Positions 8,801-62,835 of a DNA stretch of 64,000 nucleotides are shown in pieces (the stretch's first letter is position 1; each line of letters begins with the position of its first letter). The stretch comes from Macrostomum lignano (taxonomy: Eukaryota), in assembly GCA_002269645.1 (NCBI GenBank), contig NIVC01003517.1, forward strand, positions 1 to 64,000. The letters run 5' to 3'. The notes beneath the pieces are model-generated. The model was given only the letters and a program-made list of their open reading frames with translations. It ran no database searches and was not told where the DNA came from. Made by a program: the position numbers and the translations under genes.

Positions 8801-10840
8801 GACGTTTGGGCCGCCGGCTGTGTGCTCTACGCCATGTCAATGGGCAGAAGTCCGTACTCGTACTCAGAACCTGATGGTGCCGGCTCTAATACTTCTCAAG
8901 AAAGACTTGCCAACCTAATCGACAGGCTGTATGGGCCAGTGGCGGAAATTCAACCAGCCGAAAATTTTTCACCTGAGCTTCTTGACTTATGCCGACAGTG
9001 CATGGAGAAAAACACGGCTAGACGGATAAACGCTACTGGAATGTTGCTGCACCCATTCTTGAGCAATGGGGAGAGCCAGTAAGTGCTTTTGTAGCCAAGT
9101 GGCAGGTAATATATATATAAATACACGTTTTTGATAACTGAACTATAAAGAATCGAGATCATTGACCCTGACACAGAAACAATGCACGAACCTTATCATT
9201 GTCAACCTAGTCTTGATAAAAAACTTAGGGGTAGCAAAACTCGATTCATAGTCTGAATCCTCAATTTTTATGTTTGAATTCGACAGATAACACATAGCTT
9301 ACTGTACTTTAGTGTGACTTTATTGAAGTCTGCTAGAATTATTAGTAAATTATTGCTTTGCATGTTTAGAATTCAGTTCCAATTGTGAATCACAACTTTT
9401 GAAAGCTTTATGGTGCCATAAAGCTTAATTCACAGCTTGGGGGTTGTAGCCGAATGGTTAGAGTGTCGGACTCACGATTGAAAAGTCGGGGGTTCGATTC
9501 TCGACCCAATTGGGACAATTTGTGTCCTTGAGCAAGACACTTAAGTCTACATTGCTTCAGTTCACCTGCAGCTGTAAAATGGGTGCCAGCATTAGCTGGG
9601 GTGATTGAGGGTGTGTGTAGCGACCCCCCAGTCCTTGGACTGAACAGTCGTACGCAATAACTTCGGCTGAGCTGTCGGTTGCACATCTGCTGTACGTCTC
9701 ATCTCAATTTCAGTTGTTTTAAATATGATTTCATCAATTTATTTCAGAATTTTGCTTCGGACAGAAATTCACTCGTGGATTGAAGATGTGCCATCGGTGA
9801 TCGAGGCCCTATCCGTGTTGGTAAATTCCATAAACAAGAGTGACAAAGATAAGAAGACTGCAAAGGTATCTGGCACATCCGTGGCCGTCGGCGGTGGAGT
9901 CGTGGCGATCGTTGGATTTGCACTGCTAATCCCAAGCCTTGGAGCGGCGCTTCCAGTGGCACTCGCTGGAACTGGAGCGGCCATTGCTGGGAGCACCACC
10001 GCTGCCGGAGCTGAAATCATTGGTGGCGCTGTTCAGACTAATGGGGTTTGCAAGGCGCAGTCTCTCATTGTCGAGTTTAGAAATACAACGGAGCGACTGC
10101 TAAGAGATCAGCTTGAGTCGATCTGCTCCAGCGTGCAGATCCAGCTGATGAACCGTCAGTCCGTGATTGACCTCGAACGAGCAAGGATCAAAATCTTGCA
10201 GCTGAAAGCAGACGTCGATGAAATGATTTACCAGCTTCAAAGCTTAGGCATTTTAGAAGCTTTGGAAGCTGAAACGAAAGAAACCAGTAGTTTTGAAAAG
10301 TTTATATCAAAGATCCGTGAATTGACGAAAGCTAAGAAGACAAGGAATCCGGTAGTTGAGCTATTGGCGAAAATCATTGAACCCATCAATGTTCTGCTTG
10401 CGAACCTTGACGATGATCTGGGTGCAATGCAGAGAGGAAGATCTGTTAATGAAGAATCGTCAACAAGATTCAATCAAGAGCTCCAGAAATCGATCGGGTT
10501 TTTCTCCTCAATGCTTCGTATCCTTTTATTCGGCTCTTCTAAAGATGAATTTCACATGTACGTAGATGAAATCAAGTTTGGTCTGAGAGCAGCTACCGGA
10601 GGTGCGCAGATAAGTCTTGAGGCGACTGGCATTGCCGCAAGCTTAGCTGGAAGAATACTGGGAGTTGTGGGCTCGGCAGTCTTCACTGCTGTTGACATTG
10701 GATTCCTGGTGAAGTACTCAGCGGATCTGCACCGAGCTAGACAGGGTGAGGCCGCTGAAAAGGCCCAGCCAATTATCTGCTATAAGGAAATCTACGAGAA
10801 GCTGAGGGAAGAGGCTATGACTCAACTGGCTGAAAACTAA
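2058..10840 (+). CDS. Multi-exon ankyrin-pseudokinase-ankyrin-pseudokinase-apolipoprotein L-like protein, about 1340 aa; start codon or first exon unresolved
   Basis: Exons 2058(approx)-2812, 4863-5220, 5489-5991, 6543-7007, 7140-7497, 8570-9078, 9748-10840. All six introns are GT-AG with matching phases (2,0,2,2,0,2). Summed length 4041 nt is a multiple of 3. No in-frame ATG near 2058, so an upstream exon is likely. Confidence 0.7.
4863..5991 (+). CDS. Protein kinase-fold domain 1 (exons 4863-5220 and 5489-5991), probable pseudokinase
   Basis: KHRNIVQF, IFLEKIEG, YLH, HKDIRCEN, VKLIDFG, HMAPE, SDIWATGC, ARRINAIGILLHPF. Beta3 reads VVVR where VAVK is expected. Confidence 0.9.
6543..7007 (+). 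CDS. Ankyrin-repeat exon (module 2, N-terminally shortened copy of module 1)
   Basis: Near-identical to 2370-2812 (SCLHHAAASDNVQVLEAALRAGAQVNALD); phase-2 acceptor CTACCAG at 6542, donor after 7007. Confidence 0.85.
7140..9078 (+). CDS. Protein kinase-fold domain 2 (exons 7140-7497 and 8570-9078), probable pseudokinase
   Basis: KHVNIIQL, HRDIRCEN, VKLINFG (DFG to NFG), YMAPE, SDVWAAGC; same intron position as domain 1. Confidence 0.9.
9439..9690 (+). mobile_element. tRNA-derived SINE with CORE-like central domain (family 1)
   Basis: A box TAGCCGAATGGTTAGAG, B box GGTTCGATTCTC, CORE-like GTGTCCTTGAGCAAGACACTTAA...CTGTAAAATGGG; second copy at 29210-29478 on the minus strand. Confidence 0.8.
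9748..10840 (+). CDS. Apolipoprotein L-like terminal exon
   Basis: Gly/Ala-rich hydrophobic hairpin AKVSGTSVAVGGGVVAIVGFALLIPSLGAALPVALAGTGAAIAGSTTAAGAEII and C-terminal AGRILGVVGSAVFTAVDIGFLVKYSADLH resemble the two conserved ApoL blocks; acceptor TTTCAG at 9747. Recognised by eye, no profile search run. Confidence 0.7.
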
Positions 10841-23011: not shown

Positions 23012-26000
23012 CTACTGCTTGGCAGTGGACATCTGCCGCTGAATCTCAGCCAGCCCTTTCATCAGTTCCTTCATCTGCTTTGCCAGCTTCTTCTGAGATT
23101 TCCGTTGTTTGCTCAGCTGCTTCTCAATTGCCGCCAGGCGGTCGCCTCCGTCGCCTCGCGACTGCGTCAACAGCTCCCGATGAAACTCCCGACGAAAATC
23201 CTTGAGCAGGGATCGATTCGACTCAGCCAGGATGTTCTCGTTGTGCGCTTTGAGACCATCGTAGTCGCTTTGATGCTTCTCAAGTCCCTGCTGCAGGGTG
23301 GGCCGGCACAGTCGTAGCTGCAGGGCTTGGTAGATGAGGAACTGTCTGTAGTCCTCTGGGTAGCCTTCCATGCATTCTGTGCTCTGCCACCACTCCTGGT
23401 GCTGCTAGGGACAGGGGAATATTTATGCATAATTATTTAATTGCTAAATAAATATTTGATATGCTGCTTTGCTAAAAACTCCAGCAGCCGCGAACACACG
23501 TGACCATAACTTACCTACCTAAAGACAGTGGCAATCACCAACAGACACTGGCCCTCACCAATAGACAGTGGCACTCACCAACAGACAGTGGCACTCACCA
23601 ACAGACAGTGGCACTCACCAACAGACACTGGCCCTCACCAATAGACAGTGGCACTCACCAACAGACAGTGGCACTCACCAACAGGCAATGGCACTCACCT
23701 ATAGACATTGGCACTCACCAATAGACATTGGCACTCACCAATAGACAGTTGCACACACTAATAGACAGTGGCACTCACTAACAGACAGTGGCACACACGA
23801 ATAAATACTGGCACCCACTAAAACGCAGGTACACCCAACCTGAGAGACAGGGGAGCCCACTAAGACAATATCGGCGCCCTTTGGGTTCCTGCTACTCCCT
23901 CCAATACAATTTTTTGTGTACACCACTGCATAAAATTTTATAGGTAAGCTACAAAGTTGAAAATTTACATTAACTATGACATAAAACCAATCTTCAGTTG
24001 GTAATCAAAGCAAAAAGCAGAGAATATAATATCAAAGTATGCGTCAAACAATACTCTGACTATTGCGTACACAATGCAAGTAAAATCAATAAACTTATTC
24101 AACTTTTCGACATTGCTTCGATGGCTCTTTTGACATAAGAATGTCTTTAGTCATTTCCATGGACCTGCATGGTTTTATCTCACCTTGTAAGCCACTTTGA
24201 CCAACGCCTTTACAGGCACGAGCTCGTGAGTCATTAAATAAATAAATACTTTCTCAGAAAAAGTTTAAGAGAACTTACATCTTCAGAGATTCGCTGGTCA
24301 GTACGATCTGATTCTGTCTGGCCAAGAGTCGGGTGCACTTGACATTGGCGTTTTTTGCAACAAGTGTGCAGAGCTGTCCCCTTCAGATAGTGGCACTCTC
24401 ACTTTCAGACAGTGGCACTCTCACCTTCAGACAGTGGCACTCTCACTTTCAGACAGTGGCACTCTTACCTTCAGACAGTGGCACTCACCAACAGACAGTG
24501 GCACCTACAGAAAGCATTGGCGCCACCAAAAAGCAGGTACACCCAACCCGAGAGACAGGGGTGCCCACTAAGACAATATTGGCGCTCTTAGGGTGCCGTG
24601 TTACCTCTCCATTACAAATTTCTATGTACATATACGTCCCTGCATAAAACGTTCTCAGAAAAAGTTTTAAAAAGCTTACATCTTCAGGGATTCGCTGGTC
24701 AGTGTTAGATTCCGTCTCCTCAGGAGTTGGGTGCACTTGACATCGACGCTTTTTGCAGCAAGTATGCAAAGCTCGCAATGGTCGAATCAGAGCATTGTCC
24801 AGCAGGGAAAGCGGCAGGGGCAGCACGCTGACCATCCGGAACTGCTGCAGCATGTCGTAGCTGGTCTTGCGCCAGATGACCACCGTCTTGCTGGCCAGAC
24901 GGGACACCGACAGGCTGAACAGGGCGATGAGGAGATTCCACATCACGATGTTCACCAGAAGAAGAAATACGAACAGCATGAATCCGTTGAAAGCCTCTCT
25001 GAGGTTCAATGGGAGTAGGGAAATGCATACTAGTCTTACAATAATTTTGCAGTCTGAAAGCTTAAGAAAAGTTTTTGAGAAGTGTAAGAATTTCAATAAA
25101 AATTACTACGACTATTGCCTTTGACCCTTTAGCCTCCCCTGCTTTAAATCAGTAACATTCTGATTCTAACAAACAGATAAACTACCTGCCGTCAGGATGC
25201 ACGCAGGTGAGGTTGGCGGTGTGTCCCGCAGCGATGGATGCCGTGGAGCAAGCTGTTAAGTCGGTCTTCTGGTACATCGTGTACGCAACAAAGCCGGGAA
25301 GGCTGAAAATCTCTCGTACGGTTGGCCACACAGGTCGAGAAATGCCCGCTACGGGGCTTCCGTTAATGAAACTGAACGACGGGTAGAGCAACACGAGAAA
25401 GAACACACCAAATGAGAAAATCATCACAGCCAGAATTAGCAGGAATGGCATTAGATCATCCAGCAATAGGCACTGCAGCATGGAGACCTTGGGTCCGATA
25501 GTTTTCTTATAGGCCAGCAGCCGAAGCGTACGAAAGCCCCATAGTAGAAAGGAGGTCGCCAGAGTGACCTGGCAGCCATAGGACTCGCCCGACATGGTGG
25601 CGAACAGGTGAGCCTTCAATCCCAGGCCCACCCAAAGAAATAAAAGCGCCAATAGGTCGCAGTAGTTGTAGAAATCAGTTTGATCAGAAAGCGACATCTT
25701 GACGATGCGCTTAAGCCAGTACTTTTCCACCGGCTGCCAACTTGAGGCCATGTCGGCAATCTCGTGAGCAGTGAGCGCGGCCGCAAACAGCCACATCAGC
25801 GTGTCCGGAGCAGCGTTGGCAAACGTGCGAGAGAAGTCGGTCACGTACCAGGCAAAGTAAGCCAGGAACACGAAGTACGAAATCACAAAAGAAAGGAACC
25901 TGTCTCGAGTGCTGCAACCTGATTGCGAGTTTATTTCGACATCTTCCCCAGTCTCCGAGGCCTGCTTCTGCCAAGGGAACGGCTCTCGTTGTTTCCAAAG

Positions 26001-29000
26001 CTCTTTAGTGAGCTTACTCAGGCATTCGGAGGCAAAGAGAGCTTCACTGTCTAGCAGATTGATTAGCTCGAGCACAGTAAGATGCTGCAGCTCCGGTGAT
26101 GTCTGCTCTGTGTCTGCACCAGACATCTGCAATTTGTAGTATGCGAATTTTGGTCCGTACTCGGAACGGCTGATCCCATCGTAGGGGACTGTTTTGACAA
26201 AGCGACCTGTCAAGTAGCGAAACACCAGCGGCTTCATGCTTGTGTCAGCATTCAAGTAAAGCTGATCCAGAAGGTTCACCAGTGTTGAAGTTACTCGGTC
26301 CATCAGGCGACGCATCTGTTCATGCTTTCCTCGCCGTTGTTGTACCATTAGTCGAATGTTGATCAACACGCGGAGACAAGCAGGTACCATGTCGAACTGT
26401 GACGTCATAAGCAAGTCGTTTAGAAGGCCGTCCCTGCTGGTGAGAACGGCTACATCCGCAATGGTGACACCCGGTTGATCTAGGACTCTCGGGTTCAGAT
26501 CCGGGAACCAGTCCTCGGTAGTGACCGACTTCTGTGATTGAAGCAGACGAGCCCGGATCAGCTGGCAGAAGCTGGCGTCTTGAATTTTATCCAGGTAGCC
26601 CAGTACCATCAGGCTGCGCAGCATGTCGGTGGAGTTCAGCTCAAAAGCACGAGCAAGCAGCATCAACTGGGCCGTGTACCGCTGACCATCCACCTCAATT
26701 TCGCTGCTTCTGCCAGACAGTGCGGAGTCAACCGAGTATGAGTCCAGCAGACTCTGAGCCGCGTCTCGTTCGGGCAGTTGCAGAGCTCGTTTCGCTGGGT
26801 CCACCAACCGTAGAACGTCCGCCAGATAGGTTCCGGAGTTCGAATCCCCCGTCGCAACGACACTCAGCAGAGCTTCAAAACGACCCTTAAACAAAATTTT
26901 AAAACTCAAGTTCAAGTTATTATTCCTTACGCTAGTGCTCTATAAATTTATTTTAGTTTAAGTCGGCTAGTTATACTAGTACCCTTTATTGGTTTGATTT
27001 TTTCGTACATGTGCATAAGTCGACTCTACTAGACTCATCAATAGACTGCCAGAACTTCAGGACCTTCAAAAACGATAAAAACAAGGCTTTCTCGTATAAA
27101 GTTTGGGTTTCAATTTTTAAGGTTTTAAAGTTTACGCGTCTGACTCTTGCGCCACGATCCCTTATTCGATTCCGGCCAAATTCTTTAGAGACCTGCGCAC
27201 GAAAATTGGCCGAGGGGGGTGCCGTGTGATTTACAAGTATGAGGGGCCAATCCCCAAAGCACAGAGAGTGTATACAGAGAGAGAGAGAAAGTCAGGGCCA
27301 CTGTACACCCTGTGTGAGCGAGTGTATTGAGTGCGTGTCTGCATAAAGTATCTGCGCCCTTGTGAGACGATTCCGCCGAAAGCATGGAACAAGGATGCCC
27401 CACAACCATTCTTCTAACATTATTGGTCATTTTAATGCGTCCAACTCGTGCCGAAATTCTCCCGGTTCGAAAACCGGGGGCCCACCGCCCAGGTCACGGT
27501 GTTGGCAGGCCATTGTACGTATCCGTGTGTTTGTGTGACTTCAGAGCTCAGAGTAACAATGATCTGGGTTGCCAGCTCTCAACGGATTTTTATGACAGGT
27601 GTTTACAGCCTCACCTTATTGTAGGCCAGGTCCACGCAGGTCTGGCCAGCCTCGGTTTCGTCACCGAGCTGCAGCCCAGCGCCAGTCAGGTAGCGAATGT
27701 TGGCCGAGTGCCCAGCCTCGCAGGCCAGGTGCAGGCAGGTGGCGCCCTTCAGCGACCCGCTGGTCGGCATCCTGGCGGACATCTCCATTTTTTCTCCCGC
27801 TATCTTCAGCAGGGAATCCTGCAGCTTGGCCAGGTCGTATTTCGATGCGAACAGGTGAATGGCGTGCAAACCCTCGGAGTTTATCAGCAACGGTCTGTAC
27901 TTCTCAGGCTGGCCGGCCATTTTCTGAAGAATGCCGAGCAGCATTGAGTCGCTGATTTCAGAGGCCATCAGACAGTTGCGCTTGTCGAAATTCTCGGCAG
28001 TCAACGATATGCCGCCCTCCGTTTGAAAGCGTTCAAATTCAACAAAGAAGTTTTCGACGTCAAAGTCTCGCGACCAGAATTCCTGGCGCACTTTGAGCAG
28101 AGCGTGCAGCAGAGTGTTGCCTTTCTGATCCATGCAAGCCTGCCGTTTTGGCTTTATAAAGTCGGCAGACAAGAAGTCGAAGTTCTTCAGCAGGCAGGCT
28201 ATGAATACCGGGTTGCGACCCTGGCGAGATAAGGCGAAATCAAAATAGGCTACTGCAAGTAGTACTGAATGAAAATTACGCTTGTAGTTGTAATTTTTGC
28301 TACCAGAGTGGCTAAATCTAGTCTTATTGTAAATAAAATATTTTTTCGCTGCACGAAAATGTGCGCGATTGTTCAGACCCATTGCATCCACTGCACTAGC
28401 TCGCCGCTACGTTTTCCGAAAATCAAAACCTCAATAGTTCCACCTGAGGAATCCGGCAAGGTCTGACAGTAGATACGAGCTACAACGGGACTTATATTTT
28501 CTTGATGAAAGGTTCAAAATACATGTAAGAATATTTATAAGTCAGTAGAGTTGACGAGAAGATGCTACGAGCGTACTTGCATTAGTCAGCTTCTTTGCTT
28601 GTGGTTTGAGTCTCCGTTAGTAAATTCCCTAGTTTTTAGCAGTTTCTATAATCATTAACTCGGTCCCCAGGATTTGTTTAGATGCAGATATTGCAGGATT
28701 TCCGCCATAGTAGCCTCATTGGGAGCCCACAAGGGTTTTTTTCAGACATTTCGTTTACCTTCTGGTCTCCTAAACAAATAGTAGGTAAGAACAGATGTCT
28801 ATGTAAGCTAAAAATTAAGATCAGAGCCTCACCTCATGATCAATGGATCCCTCTATAGCCGCTGACGGAGTGTGAAACCCGAGCGCAACAGCAGCAGCTC
28901 GGAAGTACATCTCTCCGTAGTACCGGTTCGCGGCGCAGTAGTGCAGACAGTTCCGACCTTCGTCGTCTGCCGAGCTCAGCGTCACGCGCAAACTGCTCGC

Positions 29001-30683
29001 CTCCTCGCTTAGCAACCAGAGAAAGGCGCTCTCCTGACCCTCTGGCAGACGTGTCTCGTTGGCAGCCGCGCAGTGAACGGCGGTGCGACCTTCGGCATCG
29101 CGCCAAGTGAAGCACTCGTCGCCAAGACGGTTTCGGATGGACCGAAGGCAATCCGCACCCTGTTATTCATAATGATAATAATAACTGATTGCATCTGCCT
29201 CAATTGAGCCGGATGTGCAACCGACAGCTCAGCCGCAGCTATTGCGCGACGCATTTGAAGGCTGCGTACGGCTGTTCAGTCCAAGGACTGGGGGGTCGCC
29301 ACACACACCCTCAATTGCCCCAGCTAATGCTGGCACCCATTTTACAGCTGGGTGAACTGAAGCAATGCAGAGTTATGTGTCTTGCTCAAGAACACAAATT
29401 GTTTCGAGTGCGATTGGGAATCGAACCCCCGACCTTTCAGTTGTTAGTCCGATGCTCTAACCACTAGGCGGATACCTCCTCAGTTGTTCAACAAGTTCGC
29501 AGCAAAGATTCATTTGAATAAAACTGTATCAGGAATGCTTTTGCCTGCCTGTCGCCATCAGTCAGCCTGCCGCCTTATACTACAAAAAAGGTGCTTCTAA
29601 GGTGACCTGTTGAATACGTAGATATAGAAAGAGTTCTACGATTGATAAAGTTTAATTTATTGTATATTTGACTCCGCATCACTGATTGCTCATAGAAAAG
29701 CGGTTTTTTGGCAATAAAGCAATAAAATACTGCTATCGAGTAAGTAACACCTGTTATGAAATAAAGCGGAAATTCACCTGAAACCAAGCCGCCAGATGAA
29801 TTGGGGAATTTTTCTTCTCGTCCCTCTCTTTGAGACAGTCAGGAGTCAGCTGCTTGACGAACCAGTCCAGCGCGTCAGGAGAGTTTCGATTTTTGGCCGC
29901 GTACATCACGGCAGTCCGGCCGAGGAAGCCCTTTCGCAGGAAGCCGTCCAGTTTGCCCAGTTGCTTCTTCGCCATCTCCAGTAGCTGCACGCTTCGCTTC
30001 TCGGCGCACGCGTGCAAAGCGTTCGTGTTGCTGATGTTGCCCAAGATGAAGATCTCCTTTGGCAGGTTGTTCAGCATCCATTTGAATGTCGTCTCGTTTG
30101 GATTGTGCGCTGCGTAATACGCCACGGATCGTTTCGAGTCGTCTAGAGCTTTGAAGCAGTCTTCTCCACAGAGTCTCTTCATCAACTGCATCGCGCTGCT
30201 GTCCAGCTTCCAGGCGGCGAGATGAACCGGTGTAGCACCCGATCGAGTCCTGCTAGTCATGTACTCAACTCCGAATGAATCCGCCAGTATTTCGAATGTC
30301 TTGCACACAACAGCTGGGTCCTTTGTGCTATCGACTGCCGCCATGTGAGCAAGATTCCAGCCCTGCTCAGGGTCAGTCTCATCAGCTAAAGTGCGTTCTC
30401 CTTGTCCTTTTCCTTTTCGTACTTTGCTGTGATTCTTTACTGAAACGCCTGTTCTGGGCGGCAGCAGGCGTTCCAGTGCGATGTTGTCCCCATCGGCAAT
30501 GCATTGAACTGCCCGATTGAAAAGTTCTTTCAGATCTGCGTCTTCTGGCTTTGGCGAAATCTGAACTGACGCCGAACCGCTCGCGCCTCGACGCAGTGAT
30601 TCCGAGTCCACGAGGGTGCCCCCGTAAGGATTCGTGGCAACAAATGACGCCGTGGTTTCTGCTTTAATTGTGGTTCCGGTCAT
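23012..30683 (-). CDS. Ankyrin-repeat TRP channel with TRPM-type S1-S6/TRP module, about 1416 aa
   Basis: Exons 30683-29778, 29159-28833, 28220-27615, 26885-25186, 24998-24680, 23404-23012; phases 0,0,0,2,0 match. About 14 ankyrin-like motifs; IGPKVSML, FLLILAVMIFSFGVFFLVLLYP, NIVMWNLLIALFS, IWRKTSYD...VLPLPLSLL; C-terminal coiled coil. Confidence 0.8.
23520..23800. repeat. 21 bp minisatellite (CACTCACCAACAGACAGTGG-type) in the last TRP intron
   Basis: Visible tandem units; related array at 24383-24505. Confidence 0.9.
24383..24505. repeat. 22 bp minisatellite (CAGACAGTGGCACTCTCACTTT) related to 23520-23800
   Basis: Visible tandem units. Confidence 0.88.
27135..27360 (+). mobile_element. 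Diverged SINE-like repeat (family 2)
   Basis: B-box-like TTCGATTCC followed by blocks (GCACGAAAATTGGCC, ATGAGGGGCCAATCCCCAAAGCACAG, TCAGGGCCACTGTACACCCTGT) shared with 40240-40445. Confidence 0.55.
29210..29478 (-). mobile_element. tRNA-derived CORE-like SINE (family 1), second copy
   Basis: Reverse-complement homologue of 9439-9690, inside TRP intron 1. Confidence 0.8.
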
Positions 30684-45759: not shown

Positions 45760-48700
45760 TTAAACTTCGGTACTGACGCACTGCACAACCGCCTGTGCAG
45801 CCTGCACGGCCAGTATCGCCTTCTCCCGATTCGAAATCTCCGACAGATCCAACGCCCGACCGTTGCGCTCGTCCACGAAGACGCTCGCCAGCTGTGAGAC
45901 GTGATCCAACACGGTCAGCGTCAGATCGGTGTCCGAGATGCAGCACAGATGCTGGCTCAGCTGCTGTTGACGATCTACTGCTTTACCCTGCTTTGTCAGC
46001 AACGCCTTCAGCGCCTTCTCCGCTGCCTGCCAGCTGATGAAGCTGGCCCATTCGAACTCGCCCGCTTCGATCCATCGCTCTGCTGAGCGCAGTTTTGTCT
46101 CTGCAGTTTCCAGGCACTTTTCTGCACTGTCGGCTGAAGCTCGGCCAGCACTGGAGCCTTCGGAGAAGTGCAGCCCGCCGCCTGCGACGCCTCCGCCGTG
46201 GCGTCTCAACCAACTGATGACGACCTCTTCAGCAGTGAATATGAGGCGACACCTGGCTACTCGCTCAGCCTGCTGCTGCCAATCATCAATGAACTCAGGG
46301 AACTGGTGAGTCCAGTTGTGCTCAGCAGCGAATGATTTTATCTGTTCAAATGAATTAGCAGTACTTGAGTAGTGTGTCAGAGTCCGTTGGAGCACTTGAC
46401 GCTGTTTTTCGGTCGGCAGCGAAGCTGCACTGCTCAACAGATGGTCAATGGACGCTCTGACATCAGTGTTTCCATGTGGAACCGATGAATAAACTGAAGC
46501 TGGTTGCTTCTCGAGTAAGAACAGCTCAGCTGTCGTGGCTTTGACGTGAGCACTTTCGCCAGCGTCAATGATGTACTCACTGGTCCATGGATTCTCGACT
46601 TCAACAGGGAGCTTCTCCAGTACTTTGGCGTACACAAAGCATCCGTACTTATCCTTGTAAGCCACAGTTTTGCTCACTAGGTCTATCGGCTTTGCTGGCA
46701 GATGCCTGAGCAGGCAGTTTTTAAGCTGTGGCAAAGCCTGGCCAATCAAGGAAGCGCCCATGGTACTTAGCTCCATGCTCTTCTGACCCTTCACTTTGTG
46801 CAGAGAAACTTTACGCTTTTCCAAAACTTTCAGCATACCTTCGGGACTGTCCATCAGAAGCACAATTGTCAAATGATTTCCATGCTCCGGTGATATTTTG
46901 AAGCCATTCTGTAAAACTTTCTGAACGATATCCACAAAGTCCATCTGCCAAAGCATTCCCTTACTACCGCTGAGGTGTTCAGGGATGGCTGCATGGCTCA
47001 TAAGAATCTTTCGTTCTTGCAGCAGAAAGTTCTTGTCTTCAGCTGAGTCGCGTTGCTCGACACCGTCAAACTGCAGGCAGGTCCGCAGCTCCGACAGGCA
47101 GACAACCGAAAATCGGGACAGAAGAGAAGAGAGAGAAGCAAAAACTTCATCACCTTTGACGGACAAGTCTTTCGAATCGTGCAGAATGATGCTAGTGATG
47201 CACTGGAGCAGCACTGGGTGCCTCAGCTTAGCTTGAAGATTGCATCGGGCTGCACAGTTTTCCCCAGCGCTGCACCGATCGCTGACCTCCGTCAGCAGCT
47301 TCTCGCTCACATTCTCGCTCAGTCCTTTGAGCCCCAAGTCGGCTGCGAGGCTGAAGTACAGCCTGCGCAAACTGTCACTGCCCAGCTCGCAGAAGCTGAG
47401 ATCGAGAAATTTGACACACTTAGATTCCGCTAGCCTCTTCTGGTAGCCGTCCGAGTCGTTGATTGTGAGCTTCTGGCAGTCCACCAGCTCGAACTCGGTA
47501 TCTATTGCGTCCTGGAAGTCGTCAGGTAGCACCAGTTTAGTAGGTAGGAATAGTGTTTTTGTGGACTCAAATTTCAGCTTTCCGCCTTGTTCTAATAAAC
47601 CGATCATTGTGGTCAGGCATCGGTGAACGGAAATAAGCTGATTTTCAGTTAGATAATATTGCTGATGCTGTTCGTCGTGAATGAGCTCCAGGACCAGCCT
47701 CAGTTGCTCCAATGTTGCTGATTTGGTGGCTCCCAACTTAGTAAACAGATTTAAATGACATCTGAAATCACCTGGACAGACCTGGATGTACGGTGGCACC
47801 GAGGTTTTTTCTTCGAATGTGATTCTGTTTGGAGTGACGAAGCACGGGTCCCATCTAGGGCCTGTGAAAATGCAAGGAATTTTTCTCAAACGTGCAATCA
47901 CATTTCCCATTTTGGCACTGTTCATCCCCGTCAGATGTTCATAAATAGAGCTCATGGTCTTGAGCCTTAAACTCGCAGCAGTGTCGTGCATTCTAGATGA
48001 AGTGAATGCTTCGTTGGACAAAATGTTCTGCAGATGACGCTCAAAAGCCTCATCGGAAACAGTCTTCATGGACTTATTTAAGCAAGGTCCGCAGTCAAGA
48101 CAAGCGTACGACTCAACAGTCCAACAAAGGTAACGTGAGCTAAATTTTACGCACTGGGAGGGACTTTTCATGCAAACAGCATCGCCTGGACAAAGACTGT
48201 GTAGGTCCTTGTCGTCATTCGCTACTAAAAATGGAATCTGAGATAGTTTCTGGACAAATTTATCTGTTAGATGCGTCCGAAAGCCCACACTGTCGATAAA
48301 ATTCAGCAGCATTTTCGATCTGTTTTTAAGATCATCAGAAATGCCAACAGCCCCTTCAGTGCTGATGTCATTGGCAAACTTAATAACAGTATCAGCTGAG
48401 CACTCGGTGATTAAGCCAGCATGGAGCATCAGCTGTCTCCAACGGCCACACTGGAACCGCTCTGGCAGAAAGTTTTCCGAATCCAAAGTTTGTTTGAATA
48501 TAAATACCGTGTGATCATAAAACGTATTAGCCCTCTTCCAGCCGCATTGTGTCGGAATGATACTTGCTTCCTGTAGAGAGCTTTCGAGTTCCTTAAGTTT
48601 TGAGATTCATCTGATTCATAAACGGAATTCGATCAAAGTTTCTGCTCATTTCGCAGAGTTTCTCTAAATGCTTCTCTCGAGTTGGGTCGGACAATTTAGA

Positions 48701-51700
48701 GAAGGCAGGAAGGATGAAGTTTGCGTAGACTTCAGGTTCCGATATTTCATCGCATTTTAGTTTACTGTACAGTGATCTGAGTGCGGTGTTGTCCTTCAGG
48801 AAGATGGCCTGGCTGGAGCTCTTCCACTCGTCCATCTCGTCGGCAACGAGCGTCGCCGGCAAGATGCAGGCCTGCTCACAGTTGAGCGCTCGGCAGTGAC
48901 CGTCAGAAGTGACGAACACGGGCCACTTTCGCAACCGTTCCAGAATGTTTTTCTCGCCTTGATTTTCACTTAGCTGCCGCCAATGATTTTGAATGTACTG
49001 GAGAAAGATCACAGCTTCCTCTTCCGTAGCTGAAGTTCTTTCGGGATTTTCAGTCAGAGCGAATTCAATCACTCGAAGCATTGACTCGTGCCTCTGGAAG
49101 TTGCCGCATAGTTTTTCAACAAGCTTTAGGCTGGACATACTAAGCATTGGAGCATTCAGCTTCCGAAGAGACTTCTCGACGGCTAAGCTGTAGTCATCGA
49201 GACCATCAACTTGGACGACAGGCGCGTAAACACACGAGGCCCGTGATATGCTAACTAGACGATGCTCATTGACAGGAACCAGATGAGCATTTTTGAGCCC
49301 GGCAGACACTAGAGAATGCAGCGGGTCTTTTTGATTCGGGCAGCTGAGATTGAAAAAGTCCCACGCTCGAATGAGCCAATTTTCCAGAGCCTCTGTGTCC
49401 ATGCCCAGGTGCATGGGCGCGTAAATGTTTTCTGCGCTAAAGATTTCACTGTTTTCTTTGCGTAATATGTTGCAGAAATCCGTCACTTGAAATTCTCTTA
49501 CAAGATTCAACGCTTTTAGTCTGTCAATCTCAGCTTTAGAAAGACCAGAAATGAATGTTTTGTGCACAAACTCTTGCTTAGATTCTGTGTGCATAAACAA
49601 GTCGAAATATTCCGTAAAGAAGAGTCCTTTGTCTCCGGATTGAAACAATGACAGCTGTCCTCCAGAACTTAAATTTAGAGGCGCTCCATTCAAATTAGTC
49701 GACTTTGTTTCCAACAAATACTTGATAAACTTCAAGACGGTTTCAGGCCGCTCGAAAGGAGTCTGCTCTACATCAATTGGAACAGAGGCTCGCAATGCTG
49801 CACAGACTGGGCCGTTGAGAAACGCAATGATTGATGAAGCATCCGCGAGCAGGATGGAATCCAGTTTGCTGGACCTCAGCGATTCTACCAGTTGCCGTTT
49901 TTCGGACAAAACGAGCGGGAACTTCAATTTGTAAAGAATCTGCTTTATTGGATCTTTTAGATCGCCTGCAGCGAGAAATACAGCGTCCCATCGACTTCGC
50001 TCAAGCGCTGTGCAAGTGGAAGCCACTTCAAAGTCTGCGGCTGCTCACTTGTAGCTGGAAATATTTTCAGTCGGTTTCTAAACGCATTCTGGAAAAAGGC
50101 CTTTGCAAGCTCGTCAAAGAATGTCATGCCTTTTTCATGACAATCTGGGAGAAGCTTAAAATACTCAGGCACACTGGATTCAGTTAATACAAAGGTCCTT
50201 GCTGTTTCTAGAATACTTCCATAGCATTCAGGTAGCAGCTGCGTGGCCAACATGCGGTTCCATTGTTCCTTATAGTCAGCATTTCCGCTCGCTTTCCAAA
50301 GAGATCTTCGCGACGGGTCCAGAATGAAGTGACCGTTCACGTGAACAGGCAGCCCAGTGGTCACTGGCAGTGGAAGCAGGCAGTAGGCACGGCCCTTCAC
50401 TGCTGATGTTGCTGCTGACTCAGGTAAAAGAGCGGCTACTCCGGTTTTTGGAAGAAGACCCCAATTTCCTGTAAACACTTCCTTTTGCACTTTATCCGGA
50501 ACAGTGATGTTGCTACTGCTCAGCTTTTGACAAACCAGCCACTTGAATTTTGAGTCTACAGCCTCACCCGTACAAGTTGTGGTGAGCTCATAAGTTACTG
50601 AGCTGATTGGAAGAGCATCAAGCCTGATTCCTTTAGTCATTAAACTTTGACTGGCCACTTCGCATTTATTCTTGAAATCGTCCAAGCCTTCTTTAGAATC
50701 TGGCAGCCTGTCTGCTTGGACTCTTACGGTGTAGAGCGTATTGAGAACGCCGTCCTGCGATACTTCACTAAGCTTTACCTCCTTGACATTAACCAGAAAC
50801 AAAACTGCTTGTTCCAGTTCTTCTTTTGCCAACTGCTCATCAAATAGCGTCTTGATTTCGTTTGCATCCACAACCTTTTGGCAAATCTTTGATTGATTTG
50901 AAAACCTCAGTGGTAGACGGAAAACAGTACCTCCTTCCTGCTGCAAATGTTCTGGAAGGTATCCAGCAAATACATCCGTAAATGTTTCTTTCAGATTCTC
51001 TAACTCCTTGAACATTCCTCCAGGAGTAGCGGCCGTCGCACCAGGCATGTACTTGCAGTGCGGATCCATCACACACAGTACTTTGCCGTCAGAAAGAAAT
51101 GACGGCGCGTCAGTAATATTGTAGACACAGTTGAACCCAATTCCGTAATTCCCTGCTTTCCACAACTCGTCACGCTTGGATCCAACGCCGAGATCCTGGA
51201 TGCCTTCAATGTCAGCATCGGAGAATGTCGAGTCGTTATAGACGAGTAGCGCAGGTCCCTGTAGCTCCTTCCAGTTGTCGCTCAAAACTCGTTCGGTTCC
51301 GTGATGCCGATGATCGATGATGAAGCTGATCGTCGATGATCCCGCGTCATCCGCATTCTGGATGAGTTCTTTGAAGAGTTCGCTGCCGAATGGATAGCCG
51401 GACAGAATGCTCTTCAGTCTAGTCGTGAGATCCTCATGCTGACCAAATGGCAGCGGCCTCATCGCCTGCGATATCATGCTCTCGCGCTGGCTCCGGATGC
51501 CAAGCTTTTCGCACAGATCGAATGACAAAGTTTGGTGACAGAAGTAAGTGCCATCTGCTAGCTGGGCAATGTCCATCCACGGAATGTTATTGAAGCATAG
51601 CTGGCTACATGGCCTCAAGACGCCAGTCTTATCTGGGGCGAGAAGCTGGTTCACATGTTGATATTTCTCTTCAGAGTTCACAATTTTATAGAGTAGACTC

Positions 51701-54639
51701 AAGCTCAGTTTCAGATCATCATCTGACAGATGTGTTGATGCGCGTTGCTGAGCCAAATTTCCGAGAGCCGACACAAAATGCTTGGTTTTAAATTTCGAGA
51801 GAACTCCTGCTGCCTTGAAGAAGGGCATGAATGCTTCGTCGATCAACTCTGGTGAGAGCTTAAACAAGAACGGCGGAAAATCAGTGTCTAATTTCCACAT
51901 TGATACCTGAGTCGGCCTTCGGAATCCATGAGGTGACCAGATTACGTTGGGTACCTGCTTTATCAGGTTAGTCACATCTGGTTGGGTAATGCCCTTTTCA
52001 GAGAGCTTTTGACTAAAATATCTGTAGACGCACTGGCTGACTTTGAGTGTTTCTTGGTTGGTCTCTCTCGTATTAATCACTGTGACTAATTGCTGCCATG
52101 CAACTCCATGCGTGACCTTATTATATCGCAGTGCACCTATCGACTTCAGTAGCTCTAGTCTTGCGTTCTGTTCAACTTTGCTAAAAATAGATTCGTCTAT
52201 AACCAACTGTGAAGCTGATACCAAATCTTTGCAATTCGGAGTGTACAGCTTGTCTGGCTGGAAAAGTTCACCTGGTGGATATTTATCGGACTGCCAATTA
52301 AAGCAGCAGTCTTGTGGCTTCTGCATAGCAGGTAAGAACTTAACACTTTTGAGTTGTTCGAACGGATACCTAAATTTCCTATTAAGAAGCGACCCTAGGT
52401 AAGACAGCAATACCTTTGTTCGCTCTTCTCTGTGTGGCTCAGCCAGGGCAGTAAGCGACTCTGCTCGACGCATCACTTCCGTCCACAATAAGTCTTCGCG
52501 CATGCCAATCAGCCGTAGAGCCTTCAGCCGGTCCTCTGTCCTGAGGTCGCTGTGCGGAAATATCGGATCTTCAGAATCAAAAAGACGCGCGGCGAGACAC
52601 TTTTGATCCAGAATTTCGGACGGCTTACACAATGCATTATTGGCATTCGGAATGCAGCAGTACTTTTCTAGAGCATTTTCAACAATTTTTGTCGCAGTCT
52701 TTGACGCTGACTTCAATTCTCTGCGCTCATCTTGGCAGATTTCATCTAGAATGAACTTCAGTGCTCCGAAGCAGTCCTTAGAGTAGCTCGACTTCCACAA
52801 GCGAGACATGTTCGGCACCAAATTAAGCAGCAGTGTCTCGCCCGACCACTGACGCTGCAGAATCTTGTTCGTCAGTCCCAGCTGCTCCACAGTTCGTCGA
52901 ACTCCATCGGTCAACGATGCGACACCTTCGTGCTGACCAACGAGTCTCGTGGCGAGTCGACTCAAACAATCTGAAATCCCACCCAGTGACAGGATGCTGG
53001 GATCCAGAAACACTGTGTGACCAAAACTCTTCCACCCAGCTGATGTGTGAAAGATTGGCGCCTGACCGTCAAGCAGGGAAGCATAAAACTTCTCAATAAG
53101 CGGCCTCCACACAGACTGAGTAGCTCTGTCGAATCGAGGCCACAGCTCTTGCGAAATCTCTGCATTCACCAAAGACATTCCACTTAGAATCTTCAGAGCG
53201 TCGATGTAGACAGGACAAATGACGTCAGTGAGCAGCACTCGGTTCCACTCGCCGAGACTCCACACGCCCTGCTTCTCGTCGACCGTGACCTCGTTGAGGT
53301 GTCGTCGGCTCGAGGTGACGGAGAAGCTCGCGTTCAGCATCACCGGAAATGGATTTTCGACAGGCAGCGGTAGGAAACAGAACAGCAGCGAGGCCGGCTG
53401 TGTGTCACGTGAAAGCGGCACGATCCTGTGAGACTGCTCGACGGGCAGCGCCACAGCTCCCACAGGCGCCAGTCCGAGACGACGCTGCTCCAACGCGACA
53501 GCGAGCGACTGTCCAGTGCCGACAGCAGCGCACACGAGCCACACTCTGGTGGAGGCGACAGTGCTGATCTGAAACTGATCTTGAGCTGAGTCTCCAAGCT
53601 GAACCTCCACCTCGACAGTCGCTTGACAGCGATGCTCTTGATTTTTCTCTGGCCCTCCTTGAGTAGCAGATTCGATCAGAGCTTCGGCTACCTTGAGAAT
53701 AGAGCTCTGAGCAGCGAACTCTTGATCCGCTTGTGACATTCCTGATATTGGCAGCGGTGGCAGTGCAATGGCATGTCGCTGGAAATATTTGAGAGGGCTC
53801 TTGTGAACGCAGAACACGAGTTGAGTTTGCTTTGAAGGATCGGTCGCATTGGACGGCAGGAACAGACACCGGAATGTTCGCACTGTCTGGGTGAACAGGA
53901 GCATAGTGTCAGCTTGCTCTGCAACCAGTCTCAACAAGCCACGAATCTCCGAGTCAGAGTACACGCGATCGCAGATCTTCGACTTCGCTGCCTGAGCCTC
54001 AGTGCGCAGTGGAAGACGCAGCAGCGTGCCGGCGAAGTTTCCTTCATCTGCTTTCAAATTGCAGCCTGAGACTCCAGCGAACGGTGCAAACTGGTTGGCG
54101 TACTGATCCAGCCATCTCGGCTGTGCTTGAAAGTCGAGCTCAACTCCAGTGTCCCTGTCCCCGTGACTCGCGTACACCGCCTCCAAGTAGCCCTCGCCCC
54201 TGCGCTCACCATGCGGGTCGAGAATCAGCATTCGGTGTCGACTGAGGATCTGCGGCACGTCAGTCAGGTTGTACACCGAGTTGAAGCCCAGACCGAAGCG
54301 ACCGACCTTGGCCGTCTTCTCCAGCTTGGTGGCTCCGCTCAGCTGCAGGATGTTGTCAAAGTCCTCGTCGCTGAAGGTGGCGTTGTTGAAGGCCCACAGC
54401 GCCCGTCCCTGACAGTCGGCCATCGCCGCGTCGAGCAACGACTCGGAGCCGCGCCAGTCGGAGTTCTCGCGACAGTCGTAGAGCAGCGTGACCTCGGTGG
54501 CGCCCGCGTCGTCAGCGTTCTGCAGCAGCTCCTTGGGCACCGCGAGACCGTCAGAGTACTCGTCGAGCAGTCGCTTGAGTCGTCGGGTGAGTGGCTCAGA
54601 CTGGCCGCGCAGGCGCAGGCCGTCGGAGGTCTGGGCCAT
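45760..54639 (-). CDS. Sacsin-like protein (two sacsin repeat regions, degenerate J-like region, C-terminal HEPN), about 3000 aa, interrupted by two frameshifts
   Basis: GQSEPLTRRLKRLL..ELLQNADDAGA and FGQHEDLTTRLKSIL..ELIQNADDAGS (GHKL-type repeats); HEPN FEWASFISWQAAEKALKALL. ORFs 49957-54750, 48593-50026 and 45760-48486 are consecutive. Probable ATG at 54639 after an acceptor at 54649. Confidence 0.88.
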
Positions 54640-54744
54640 TCTGGAGGCCTGTGCGTAAAATTTTTGGAGGGGGTTGAACTGGGATTGAAATACATGAAAA
54701 TGCATGAGTTGCATGGACGCTTTTGAACCCCATGAACCACAAAA

Positions 54745-55120
54745 TCTCAAAAAGCAGACCCCAAAATCTCAAACAGCAGACCCCAAAATCTCAAACAGCA
54801 GACCCCAAAATCTTAAACAGCAGACCCCAGTCCCTCCTCAGCAGACCCCAGTCCCTCGCTCAGCAGACCCTAGTCCCTCCGACAGCAGACCCCAGTCCCT
54901 CCCTCAACAGACCCCAGTCCCTCCCTCAGCAGACCCTAGTTCCTCGCTCAGCAGACCCCAGTCCCTCCGACAGCAGACCCCAGTCCCTCCCTCAACAGAC
55001 CCCAGTCCCTCCCTCAACAGACCCCAGTCCCTCCCTCAACAGACCCCAGTCCCTCCCTCAGCAGACCCCAGTCCCTCCGGCAGCAGACCCCAGTCCCTCC
55101 GACAGCAGATCCCAGTCCCT
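54745..55120. repeat. About 21 bp minisatellite (CAGCAGACCCCAGTCCCTCCC-type) upstream of the sacsin-like exon
   Basis: Visible tandem units grading from CAGACCCCAAAATCTCAAA to CAGACCCCAGTCCCTC. Confidence 0.93.
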
Positions 55121-59451: not shown

Positions 59452-61935
59452 CAGTAGAAAGACCATGGGGGTGTATTTCAAATACACACATTTTTCTTTT
59501 GTCTGGATCTCCGAAAATATTCAACCAATTGCCATCAAAATCCAGAACACGGGCTAAAATTTTCCGCTCTATTCGATGAAGCAACTCCGAGAATCACGAA
59601 AAATCGGCATCGTCGAGATATTCAACGATTCTCCTCGGGGTGTCCGGTGGCAAAAACCACCAACATTGGCAAATTTTTTCTGTTCACAAAATCTCATCCT
59701 GAAACCACGTCGGCTCAGGAAACTATGCATAGCAGTCGTAAAGGCCTTTCTTCTCAGCATCCCAGGAACCAGGGTCCCCTTCATCACCGTCTGGAGCATC
59801 GGCGGCGACCGTCAGGACCTTCAACAAAAGCACCCGATCGGCATCGCAGAGACGGCTGCGTTCCCAAAACTGAAATGGAAGAATCCTCTTCTGCATGCAG
59901 CATTCAGTCAGTAGACATAATCGGTGAATGAAATGGACGACGGCGACCCTCTAGGTTGACCTGTAGACATACAAGCGACCTTCGGGACCTTCAACGGAGT
60001 GCCACCACGCGGCCCCGACTAGCTGGCACCCCCAACATCGTGAATTTTCTGTCAAGGCACCAAACCAGGCATGTCTGCATATTATACAATGGTCCTGCAC
60101 CATGTTCAGCATTCAGCTCTGTCTGGACGACCTTCGGGACCTTCAACGGAGTGCTACCACGCGGCCCCGACTAGCTGGCACCCCCAACATCGTGATTTTT
60201 CTATCAAGGCACCAAACCAGGCATGTCTGCATATTATACAATGCTTTTGCACCGTGTTAAATTGGAGAGTTACAGATTTAACTGGCCCAAAGCGGGCCGA
60301 AACGTGATGTTGCTGTCCACCATGCATCACGACAGACAATTGCTTCCCAATGGCAAGCCCGTAGCAATAGGCTCGTACTACAATTCTACCAAGAGTGGCA
60401 CGGACACCTGCAACAGGATGTTCCGCACATCCGACTGCAAGCGAAAGTCCGACTCATGTGAGAAGGCAATCTTCTCCGGCGGCATACTCAACATAGCAGC
60501 TGTGAATGCCGCTGCTATCTGGAGACTGCCGCACCCGGAGCTCTGCGCCTCGTCGAACTATCGCAACGAGTTCCAGCGCAAGGCAGCTGCGCAACTTCTG
60601 CAACCTCTGATCGAGGAGCGCTCGCAATCGGCCGCTCTTCTTCAAAATCTGTCCAATCATCACAGGCTGATGTTCCAGCTCGCAGGTTGTCGAATCAACG
60701 ACGAGCAAATGAAGGAACAGGCACGCGAAGCGGCGGCTGTGGTGTCAGCTGGTAGCAGAAAGCGCTGTGCAACATGCGCGAGACAAAAGTCAAAGGACGA
60801 GAAGCGTGCCTTGAGTGCAACAACAAGGAAGCGTTGCGTGTGTGACGAAGGAATTTGCCGAAGACACACTGCAATGGAAGTGACAGTGAGTCACCATTAC
60901 TGCCCGCGTTGTGTACCAAATTAAATAGTGACAATTGACTCAGCCTTTGTGTCTATGTGTCGGTGTTCAGATCCTTCTGCTTTGAATTTGCTGTAATATC
61001 ATTTTTGACATGCTGTAATATCATTTTTGACATGCTGCTGTAGTATCCTTTTTGACAAATTAAATATATTTTATATTATTTAATCGCCAGTTAAATCTGT
61101 AACTCTCCAATTTAACACGGTGCAAAAGCATTGTATAATATGCAGACATGCCTGGTTTGGTGCCTTGATAGAAAAATCACGATGTTGGGGGTGCCAGCTA
61201 GTCGGGGCCGCGTGGTAGCACTCCGTTGAAGGTCCCGAAGGTCGTCCAGACAGAGCTGAATGCTGAACATGGTGCAGGACCATTGTATAATATGCAGACA
61301 TGCCTGGTTTGGTGCCTTGACAGAAAATTCACGATGTTGGGGGTGCCAGCTAGTCGGGGCCGCGTGGTGGCACTCCGTTGAAGGTCCCGAAGGTCGCTTG
61401 TATGTCTACAGGTGAACCTAGAGGGTCGCCGTCGTCCATTTCATTCACAGATTATGTCTACTGACTGAATGCTGCATGCAGAAGAGGATTCTTCCATTTC
61501 AGTTTTGGGAACGCAGCCGTCTCTGCGATGCCGATCGGGTGCTTTTGTTGAAGGTCCTGACGGTCGCCGCCGATGCTCCAGACGGTGATGAAGGGGACCC
61601 TGGTTCCTGGGATGCTGAGAAGAAAGGCCTTTCCGACAGATGGACCCAGATTATTGAGCCAATATGGATTCACCATAAAGGTTTATACAGTGTAGTGTTG
61701 GTTGTCCTTGCTACCAGTGTCTTCGACAAGAATCGTTGAATATCTCGACGATGCTGACGTCGGATGACTTTGAAAGTTAATTCGTTAGAAAGGGGGGGGA
61801 ATTTTGATCCAAATGGTGGACTTTTACGAAAATCGGTTATTCGGTTTTCGAGCTATGGTGAAATTGGTTGTGTGTATTTGTAATACACCCCCATGGTCTT
61901 TCCCCATGGGGAAAAATAGCGTGGTCTTTCTACTG
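59452..61935 (+). mobile_element. piggyBac-derived non-autonomous element with internal foldback arms, nested in the Gypsy integrase
   Basis: TTAA duplicated at 59448-59451 and 61936-61939; 14-bp TIR CAGTAGAAAGACCA; subterminal repeat GAAAGACCATGGGGGTGTATTWCAAATACACAC; transposase remnant. Confidence 0.92.
60223..60924 (+). pseudogene. piggyBac transposase C-terminal remnant with cysteine-rich domain
   Basis: NVMLLSTMHH, GKP..I..YYNSTKSGTDT, LNIAAVNA, RKRCATC...CVC...ICRRH...CPRC; the N-terminal catalytic region is absent. Confidence 0.85.
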
Positions 61936-62835
61936 TTAACGGGCCGGCGAAATCTATGTGCACTCGATTCCAGCGATCGATTTCATCCGGCCACGATTGC
62001 CACTGTGGTCTCCTGTAATCCTTTCCTTTGCAACATTGCTCACATGCCTTCGCAAAATGTTCGATGTCCTTGTCAATATTGCTCCACCAAACAGACTGTC
62101 GGGCAAACGACTTCATGGATTCTTTGCCCATATGTCCCTTGTGAAGCTCCTCAAGCACGCTCTTGCGCAGGCTTGGCGGGATCACCAAACGATTTCCCTT
62201 AAAGATTAGGCCATTATCTATGACCAAGTCGTTCCGTACTATGGCATACTGTTGCAGTGGACCCCTGGTAGATCTTTTCCATCCGTGGAGTACTTGTTTG
62301 AAAAGCTGCTTCATTACTGGATCTCGCTTCGACTGTTCGCGAATGACGTCCTTTGACACGGGTGGATCGCTGGTACAGTCTTGCATTGCGTCGACTTCGA
62401 AGTGTCCAGCTTCGGATCCGGATGAGGCACAACGCAATAGAGCGTCAGGAACAGTTATCTCGCTCGTGGCCTTGTGTACGATCTCGTAGTTGTACTCCAT
62501 CAATGTCACTGCCCAGCGCTGTAATCTTGCTGCCGTTACTGATGAAAGAGTCTTGTTCTGGTGAAAAATGTAATGTAGAGGTTTGTTGTCTGTGACAAGC
62601 TTGAATTTCCATCCATGCAGAAACTTATGCAACCGCTTGACTGCCCAGATGACAGCCAGGGCCTCGCATTCGATTTGAGCATAGTTCATCTCTGCCTTGG
62701 ATAGACTCTTAGAGACATAAAGCACTGGTCTGCCTCTCTGCTCCAGCACCGCTCCGATTCCCTGTGGAGATGCATCCGTCGTAAGCGTGACCTCCACCGA
62801 TGGATCGAAGGTTGCCAGAACCGAATCCTGTGTTA
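61936..62835 (-). CDS. Gypsy RNase H and integrase N-terminus
   Basis: TDASPQGIGAVLEQ, NYAQIECEALAVIWAV, LVTDNKPL, LHKGHMG...CEQC, RVHIDFAGPL. Confidence 0.93.

Follow-up and report, generated by a model that had tools for sequence, protein, structure and literature searches.

The window analysed here (a stretch of 64,000 nucleotides of Macrostomum lignano DNA, positions 1 to 64,000 of contig NIVC01003517.1) carries on its minus strand, between positions 30683 and 23012, an intact protein-coding gene that joins an ankyrin-repeat array to a TRPM-type ion channel module. With a probability of roughly 85%, this gene encodes one subunit of a tetrameric TRPM-type cation channel in which the SLOG/MHR1-2 region is replaced by about 14 ankyrin repeats, and which is one of the ankyrin-bearing TRPM-like channels of flatworms. 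The assignment is carried by the gene structure, by a domain content that includes a TRPM-type transmembrane domain and no SLOG domain, by the homology of the linker and the terminal ankyrin repeat to those of the schistosome channel TRPM-MCLZ, and by clade membership. Judged from its sequence, the gene is a member of a published architectural class, the SLOG-less, ankyrin-bearing TRPM-like channels of flatworms, and not a new kind of channel.

The six exons, when joined, gave a reading frame of 4251 nt (1416 codons) without internal stop, in which the start ATG at 30683 is the first ATG after an in-frame stop. All introns of the gene are of the GT-AG type and measure 618, 612, 729, 187, and 1275 bp. 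Exons 1 to 3 (906, 327, and 606 nt) are each phase 0, and at the junction of exons 4 and 5 a split codon (AG before the intron, A after it) restores the frame. The features of the gene, with ankyrin units located by Pfam and by a local hidden Markov model (HMM), are as follows.

Exon 1, 30683-29778, minus strand: amino acids 1-302, comprising a disordered N-terminus and ankyrin repeats 1-6, with Pfam Ank_4 and Ank_2 matches; the donor GTGAAT cuts repeat 6.
Exon 2, 29159-28833, minus strand: amino acids 303-411, comprising repeats 7-8 after the remainder of ankyrin repeat 6; both ends are phase 0, with acceptor AACAG and donor GTGAGG; the ankyrin HMM places units at amino acids 326-356 and 374-383.
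Exon 3, 28220-27615, minus strand: amino acids 412-613, comprising ankyrin repeats 9-13 and the first helix of repeat 14; Pfam Ank at amino acids 570-591, ankyrin HMM units at amino acids 412, 445, and 570.
Exon 4, 26885-25186, minus strand: amino acids 614-1180, comprising the second helix of ankyrin repeat 14, the linker, pre-S1, S1-S5, the pore helix, and the pore loop with its Cys pair, delimited in part by hydropathy segments.
Putative MHR4-like helical linker, 26819-25920, minus strand: amino acids 636-935, within exon 4.
Exon 5, 24998-24680, minus strand: amino acids 1180-1286, comprising S6 (…VNIVMWNLLIALFS), the TRP helix IWRKTSYDMLQQF, the post-TRP motif VLPLPLSLL, and a Cys-rich tail.
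Exon 6, 23404-23012, minus strand: amino acids 1287-1416 and the stop codon, comprising a conserved WW…YP..Y..FL.YQA.Q.R motif and the terminal coiled coil.
Terminal coiled coil, 23245-23015, minus strand: amino acids about 1340-1416, with weak Pfam coiled-coil matches and a long helix in the AlphaFold2 model.

An exhaustive HMMER search revealed that the public protein BOX15_Mlig028468g2 (P0002 in our set; 1414 amino acids), labelled by NCBI as 'hypothetical protein BOX15_Mlig028468g2, partial [Macrostomum lignano]', differs from the 1416-residue model only by the initial Met and by a single Gln. This extra Gln arises at a NAGNAG acceptor of exon 6, where the public model takes the acceptor 3 nt downstream (23401). 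In two of the ankyrin repeats, 6 and 14, an intron separates the first helix from the second and the repeat resumes in frame in the next exon; the gene itself thereby gives evidence of a single message for the ankyrin exons and exon 4. The original prediction, of three phase-0 ankyrin exons spliced in frame to a six-transmembrane module, was borne out by this model, and the junction it named (27615/26885) was recovered.

The ankyrin repeats cover residues 107-635 (Pfam Ank_2 1.9e-21, Ank_4 2.8e-14). The local ankyrin HMM, of which a first version with seven seeds was too weak and which was then iterated on the proteins under study, detected nine repeat units, five of them with a positive score, compared with a mean of 0.02 in 50 shuffles; this HMM still under-counts degenerate repeats. 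Five further degenerate units fit the 33-47 residue spacing, and the predicted number of about 14 repeats is reasonable, although the HMM detects only nine.

The channel module, consisting of six transmembrane segments and the TRP helix, lies at residues 936-1250, and the last 75 residues or so are predicted to form a long helix with weak coiled-coil matches. When either the C-terminal 803 amino acids or the S1-TRP region alone was compared by phmmer with all PDB sequences, the best 60 matches were all TRPM chains, with TRPM2 at the top (2e-16), and 65 distinct sequences matched the channel part at E<=10. Likewise, the best 50 matches listed by Foldseek were all TRPM chains (top 7e-10, the query being a low-confidence AlphaFold2 model), and the transmembrane profile of the window family matched that of SLOG-bearing TRPMs at 100% by hhalign (E 1.5e-43). 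Alignment with canonical TRPMs placed in register TIGPKV in the S4-S5 linker, LLYPS at the end of S5, and NLLIALFS at the end of S6, and the two pore-loop Cys residues aligned with the conserved TRPM pair. In the TRP helix, which reads IWRKTSY instead of the IWKFQRY of TRPMs, the Trp is conserved, as is the placement of the helix behind S6, but the FQR core is not; the post-TRP motif is VLPLPLSLL compared with ALPPPF in TRPMs. A putative S2/S3 cation site can be recognised as HEIAD in S2, with the E kept and Q replaced by D, and YNYCD in S3, with N and D kept. The predicted TRPM hallmarks (GPK, LLYP, the pore Cys pair, NLLIALFS, VLPLPLSLL, and the coiled coil) were thus all found in the alignment with canonical TRPMs, the coiled coil by weak matches, and the divergence of the TRP box was confirmed.

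In the window protein, Pfam gave no match to LSDAT_euk, the SLOG/MHR1-2 domain, at E<=1, and a phmmer search with the SLOG domain of P0045 matched 43 other proteins, none of them from the window family. On this point, the absence of SLOG/MHR1-2, the original prediction is supported.

This combination has been described before. TRPM-MCLZ (Smp_333650), the schistosome channel activated by meclonazepam, lacks MHR1/2-SLOG, has N-terminal ankyrin-like repeats, and forms a cation channel in HEK293 cells (PMC10788528; PMC11731825). It falls in a 'TRPM-like' clade that adjoins the TRPMs and is reported for all parasitic flatworms (PMC12861061); its orthologues are from trematodes, cestodes, and monogeneans, and the clade has been treated by Park et al. 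2023, Sprague et al. 2024, and Rohr et al. 2026. In the accounts of Himmel et al. (PMC7306681) and Morini et al. (PMC13143021), TRPM and TRPS channels are ankyrin-free apart from cryptic repeats in MHR3/4. The original prediction of a new chimeric TRP subtype does not stand in its claim to novelty, since SLOG-less, ankyrin-bearing 'TRPM-like' channels had already been published as TRPM-MCLZ (PMC10788528, PMC11731825, PMC12861061). The same architecture, for which it had proposed a search, was found in TRPM-MCLZ of parasitic flatworms and in many M. lignano paralogues. The textbook view that TRPM-type pores never carry ankyrin arrays is corrected by this locus.

The family was found by an exhaustive HMMER search of representative proteins, while a word-indexed search with the C-terminal query or the family profile gave almost nothing. 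The search returned 437 related proteins, 29 of them with E<=1e-30 at 31-43% identity, and a Pfam scan of the top matches detected Ank in 26 of 31 and SLOG in none of the 31. The close relatives that were looked up are all from M. lignano, with the exception of P0007 (MEE4247282.1), a window-family member of 1537 amino acids and 40% identity deposited under a 'Kangiellaceae bacterium' metagenome-assembled genome. P0007 nearly fills its contig of 5106 bp, so that its ankyrin and channel parts lie in one near-uninterrupted frame; the contig is almost certainly eukaryotic (flatworm-like) and mis-binned into the bacterial genome. The best match outside Macrostomum was an Opisthorchis protein, whose orthogroup spans trematodes and cestodes. 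Since the Schistosoma protein P0182 (1380 amino acids) has H827, H831, Y864, E868, R943, H946, Y1038, and Y1117 at the positions published for Sm.TRPM-MCLZ (8 of 8; PMC12861061), this Opisthorchis/Schistosoma orthogroup was identified as TRPM-MCLZ. A separate observation concerns P0025 of Opisthorchis viverrini (1906 amino acids), in which the S3-TRP region occurs twice, at residues 803-984 and 1480-1700; this doubling fits the duplicated alternative exon 3a/3b of trematode TRPM-MCLZ read through as one protein.

A neighbour-joining tree of the S1-TRP region (109 sequences, 282 columns, 100 bootstraps), provisionally rooted at its midpoint or with TRPA1 of Clytia, united the window clade with two divergent M. 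lignano proteins at 98%, the MCLZ clade at 100%, and a second M. lignano group, clade K, at 100%; MCLZ and K were joined at 56%. When TRPA1 of Clytia was used as the root, every group lay at a saturated distance of about 3.0, which made the root position uninterpretable. The window clade comprises at least 14 deeply diverged clusters of M. lignano paralogues and is the most divergent group at the level of transmembrane profiles. The window protein is therefore not an orthologue of TRPM-MCLZ; it falls in another clade, one with a strong expansion in Macrostomum. In the searchable literature, no paper was found on the window clade or on such channels in Macrostomum, and this Macrostomum-specific, strongly expanded clade with a longer ankyrin array appears to be the new part. 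Clade K (P0036, P0040, P0048, P0053, P0057, P0060, and P0062) is a further expansion in M. lignano: P0036, P0040, and P0048 show Pfam Ank, PF25508 ('TRPM2-like domain'), and Ion_trans, and in P0053, P0057, P0060, and P0062 ankyrin repeats were shown by the local HMM only. This group is nearer to TRPM-MCLZ than the window clade is, and may represent free-living co-orthologues of the drug target.

The linker between the array and the channel (residues 636-935) has no Pfam match, and PF25508 was not detected in the window protein. Profile comparison by hhalign matched the linker of the window family to that of TRPM-MCLZ at 93.7% (E 1.9e-7, 124 columns) and to that of clade K at 89%, while canonical TRPM MHR3/4 was matched by the MCLZ linker at 96.8% and by the clade K linker at 99.6%. 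Because these profile matches form a chain from the window family through MCLZ to TRPM, the linker is best described as a shortened, very divergent MHR4-like region, a relative of TRPM MHR3/4 through transitive matches. The terminal ankyrin repeat GQTCVDLAYNKGRFEALLSVV aligns with GKTALDLAYAAGRSQLLVDVL of TRPM-MCLZ, and the linker block TSQFDMVPACL with MRQFDVLPAAV (motif RQFD.[LI]P). These data do not show the channel to be 'chimeric', as first predicted: by the transitive matches its linker is probably related, at a distance, to MHR3/4 of TRPMs. Cryptic ankyrin repeats are reported for MHR3/4 itself (PMC13143021, citing Burroughs 2015), and the array could therefore be an old one that was kept just as well as one acquired by a recent fusion.

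In both the window protein and TRPM-MCLZ, ankyrin repeats occupy the N-terminal place of SLOG/MHR1-2, the last of these repeats and the helical linker are homologous, and a TRPM-type S1-S6 region with GPK, NLLIALFS, and LPPP goes together with a non-canonical TRP box. They are also similar in having few exons (six in the window gene and three in TRPM-MCLZ) and in size (1416 and 1380 amino acids). They differ in that the window protein lies outside the MCLZ clade (100%), in its separate clade (98%), has about 14 ankyrin repeats against about 7, and has a linker of about 300 residues against about 490. PF25508 was undetected in both the window protein and TRPM-MCLZ (P0182, P0190), and was detected in P0036, P0040, and P0048 of clade K. 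Among the residues of the meclonazepam pocket, the window protein keeps just E868 and R943, with H827 replaced by F, H831 by Y, Y864 by L, H946 by R, and Y1117 by F, and its filter stretch is AYTMYQ instead of FYSIFE.

With canonical TRPMs (TRPM2, 4, 5, 3, 7, and 8 and SLOG-bearing invertebrate TRPMs) it shares the transmembrane fold, the E of S2, the N..D of S3, the Arg of S4, GPK, LLYP, the pore Cys pair, NLLIA[LM]FS, the Trp of the TRP helix, the post-TRP proline motif, and the C-terminal coiled coil. Unlike these channels, it has a long canonical ankyrin array without SLOG/MHR1-2, its MHR3/4 is recognisable via intermediates only, its TRP box is IWRKTSY and not IWKFQRY, and it has no NUDT9H or kinase domain. 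The long N-terminal ankyrin array followed by a six-transmembrane TRP channel is a feature of TRPN (NOMPC) and TRPA1, and TRPA1 also has a C-terminal coiled coil; however, the sequences of the pore and of the voltage-sensor-like domain in the window protein are of another type, and its array falls short of the 29 repeats of NOMPC and is far less regular.

Several observations weigh against the assignment as a TRPM-like conducting channel of this group. The gene model was read from the genomic sequence alone, and the public model may itself be a computational prediction. Both AlphaFold2 models were of low confidence: that of residues 399-1414 of P0002 (16 homologues) had a pLDDT of 44, and the single-sequence model of the N-terminal 663 amino acids, with 38, was useless for repeat counting. 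The direct hhalign comparison of the window-family linker with canonical TRPM MHR3/4 gave 0.8%, which is not significant; all ankyrin-bearing channels were separated from the SLOG TRPMs at merely 50% bootstrap; and the hhalign transmembrane scores of the window family (204 with MCLZ, 221 with K, 301 with SLOG TRPMs) did not place it closer to MCLZ than to canonical TRPMs. Moreover, the selectivity-filter stretch is AYTMYQ, compared with FGxFE in its own family and FGQ/FGE in TRPMs, and at the acidic position of the TRP helix, occupied by E in the aligned TRPMs and in the rest of the aligned family, this protein has Q.

That two neighbouring genes, one with the ankyrin exons and one with the channel exons, were merged by gene prediction is very unlikely. 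Models of M. lignano genes do carry errors (P0025, P0013, and P0178 look fused or duplicated), and such a merger could escape a model joined from genomic sequence; but ankyrin repeat 14 crosses the exon 3/4 junction, in agreement with the predicted membership of both parts in one gene, the introns are merely 187-1275 bp with the frame open across every junction, and the order of ankyrin array, linker, and channel is kept in dozens of paralogues and in the cloned and expressed TRPM-MCLZ (PMC10788528), as well as in P0007, whose whole protein lies within one 5.1-kb contig. A pore of the TRPA, TRPN, or TRPC type, which only the long ankyrin array would favour, has next to no chance of being correct and was rejected on the PDB, Foldseek, and transmembrane HMM results: no such chain occurs among the 60 best PDB matches, with just 65 sequences at E<=10, or among the best 50 of Foldseek, Clytia TRPA1 was unmatched by the transmembrane HMM of the family at E<=1e-5, and the motifs (GPK, LLYP, NLLIALFS, LPxP) are those of TRPM. 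The pore is of the TRPM type, as first predicted.

A different history of the clade was also considered, in which it would be a Group-1 TRP subfamily of its own, older than the divergence of SLOG-bearing TRPMs from TRPM-MCLZ-like channels, with an ancestral ankyrin array retained and without any SLOG swap. Midpoint rooting set the window clade outside MCLZ, K, and SLOG TRPMs (split 98%), Clytia TRPA1 joined the window-clade branch in 38 of 60 replicates, and the cryptic ankyrin repeats reported in TRPM MHR3/4 (PMC13143021, citing Burroughs 2015) would agree with such an origin. Nevertheless, this history is unlikely: the outgroup distances are saturated and the window clade is the longest branch, so that long-branch attraction would give the same picture; the clade was found only in Macrostomum and one environmental contig, for which a lineage-specific, fast-evolving expansion is the better fit; and it is specifically with MCLZ and K that the linker and the terminal ankyrin repeat agree. 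Were the Macrostomum clade after all an independent early TRPM-stem lineage with an ancestral Group-1 ankyrin array, which seems doubtful, the TRPM ancestor would have had ankyrins, SLOG would have been added in front, and MHR3/4 would be an ankyrin remnant; the clade would then be a living intermediate and qualify as its own TRP subfamily. It is quite unlikely, too, that this copy, whose filter lost the glycine and the acidic residue of the family, acts as a subunit that does not conduct or that modulates other channels, or is a paralogue in decay. The replacement of FGxFE by AYTMYQ points in this direction, the protein deviates at 20 of 105 columns in which 9 or more of the 10 other members of the family have the same residue, a number towards the upper end of the 5-23 seen across the family, and the many paralogues make redundancy plausible. 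However, the frame is intact through 4.25 kb and six exons with splice sites that are all canonical, the deviations are mostly conservative (D/E, I/V, L/I, S/T, F/Y), and the S6 gate region, the GPK linker, the S2/S3 site, and the pore Cys pair are retained. The sequence of this copy gives no sign of decay; its conduction or selectivity may be unusual, and an altered selectivity or a modulatory role is possible.

For the preferred reading, a conducting TRPM-like subunit, the polypeptide would be organised from N to C as a cytoplasmic ankyrin solenoid, a shortened MHR4-like linker, pre-S1, an S1-S4 voltage-sensor-like domain, the S4-S5 linker with GPK, S5-pore-S6, the TRP helix, and C-terminal helices ending in a coiled coil. 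By analogy with TRPM structures and with TRPM-MCLZ, four subunits would assemble into a cation-conducting tetramer held together by the coiled coil and gated via the S1-S4/TRP pocket, with a probable dependence on Ca2+. The ankyrin solenoid may serve in tethering or sensing, as a cytoplasmic docking module or as one that couples force or ligands to the channel; the earlier proposal of the array as a new sensor domain was not borne out and is a conjecture.

TRPM-MCLZ is a validated anthelmintic target that has been described in print for parasitic flatworms only. A large and deeply diverged set of channels of the same design, with at least 14 clusters in the window clade in addition to clade K, is present in M. 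lignano, a species that is free-living and open to genetic work. It could thus serve as a harmless laboratory model for the stimuli acting on the ankyrin array and the voltage-sensor-like pocket, and for the origin of the SLOG-less architecture.

In the gene region, Rfam and ARAGORN returned nothing, and the introns contained the following repeats.

Pseudo-exon, 24279-24374, minus strand: an out-of-phase partial copy of the 3' end of exon 5, located in intron 5 (tblastn 78% identity to amino acids 1256-1286).
Minisatellite of a 20-mer, 23523-23798: flanks the pseudo-exon in intron 5 (Tandem Repeats Finder).
Minisatellite of a 22-mer, 24380-24504: flanks the pseudo-exon in intron 5 (Tandem Repeats Finder).

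The pseudo-exon copies the last 31 codons of exon 5, including the donor, and the two minisatellites have a related unit of about 20-22 bp in 13.8 and 5.8 copies, an arrangement that resembles a local tandem duplication of the exon-intron boundary. In intron 1, a tRNA-like stretch (…GGTTAGAGCATCGGACT…GGTTCGATTCCC) at 29416-29462 on the minus strand, which occurs once in the window and was not called by ARAGORN or Rfam, is probably the remnant of a tRNA-derived short interspersed nuclear element.

Elsewhere in the window, a separate ankyrin-repeat open reading frame (ORF) at 2058-2816 (Ank 3e-12) lies on the plus strand, opposite to the channel gene, and has 39% identity over 82 amino acids to ankyrin repeats 7-8 of the channel (tblastn). 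A 371-amino-acid ORF at 9725-10840 on the plus strand contains an apolipoprotein-L-like domain (PF05461, 7.6e-10), which is unusual for a flatworm. On the minus strand, three consecutive long ORFs of 1597, 477, and 908 amino acids at 45760-54750 constitute a giant sacsin-like gene (Pfam SACS 9e-144, C-terminal HEPN 6e-11), and at 61853-62797 there is a pol fragment of a long terminal repeat retrotransposon with RNase H and an integrase zinc-binding domain.

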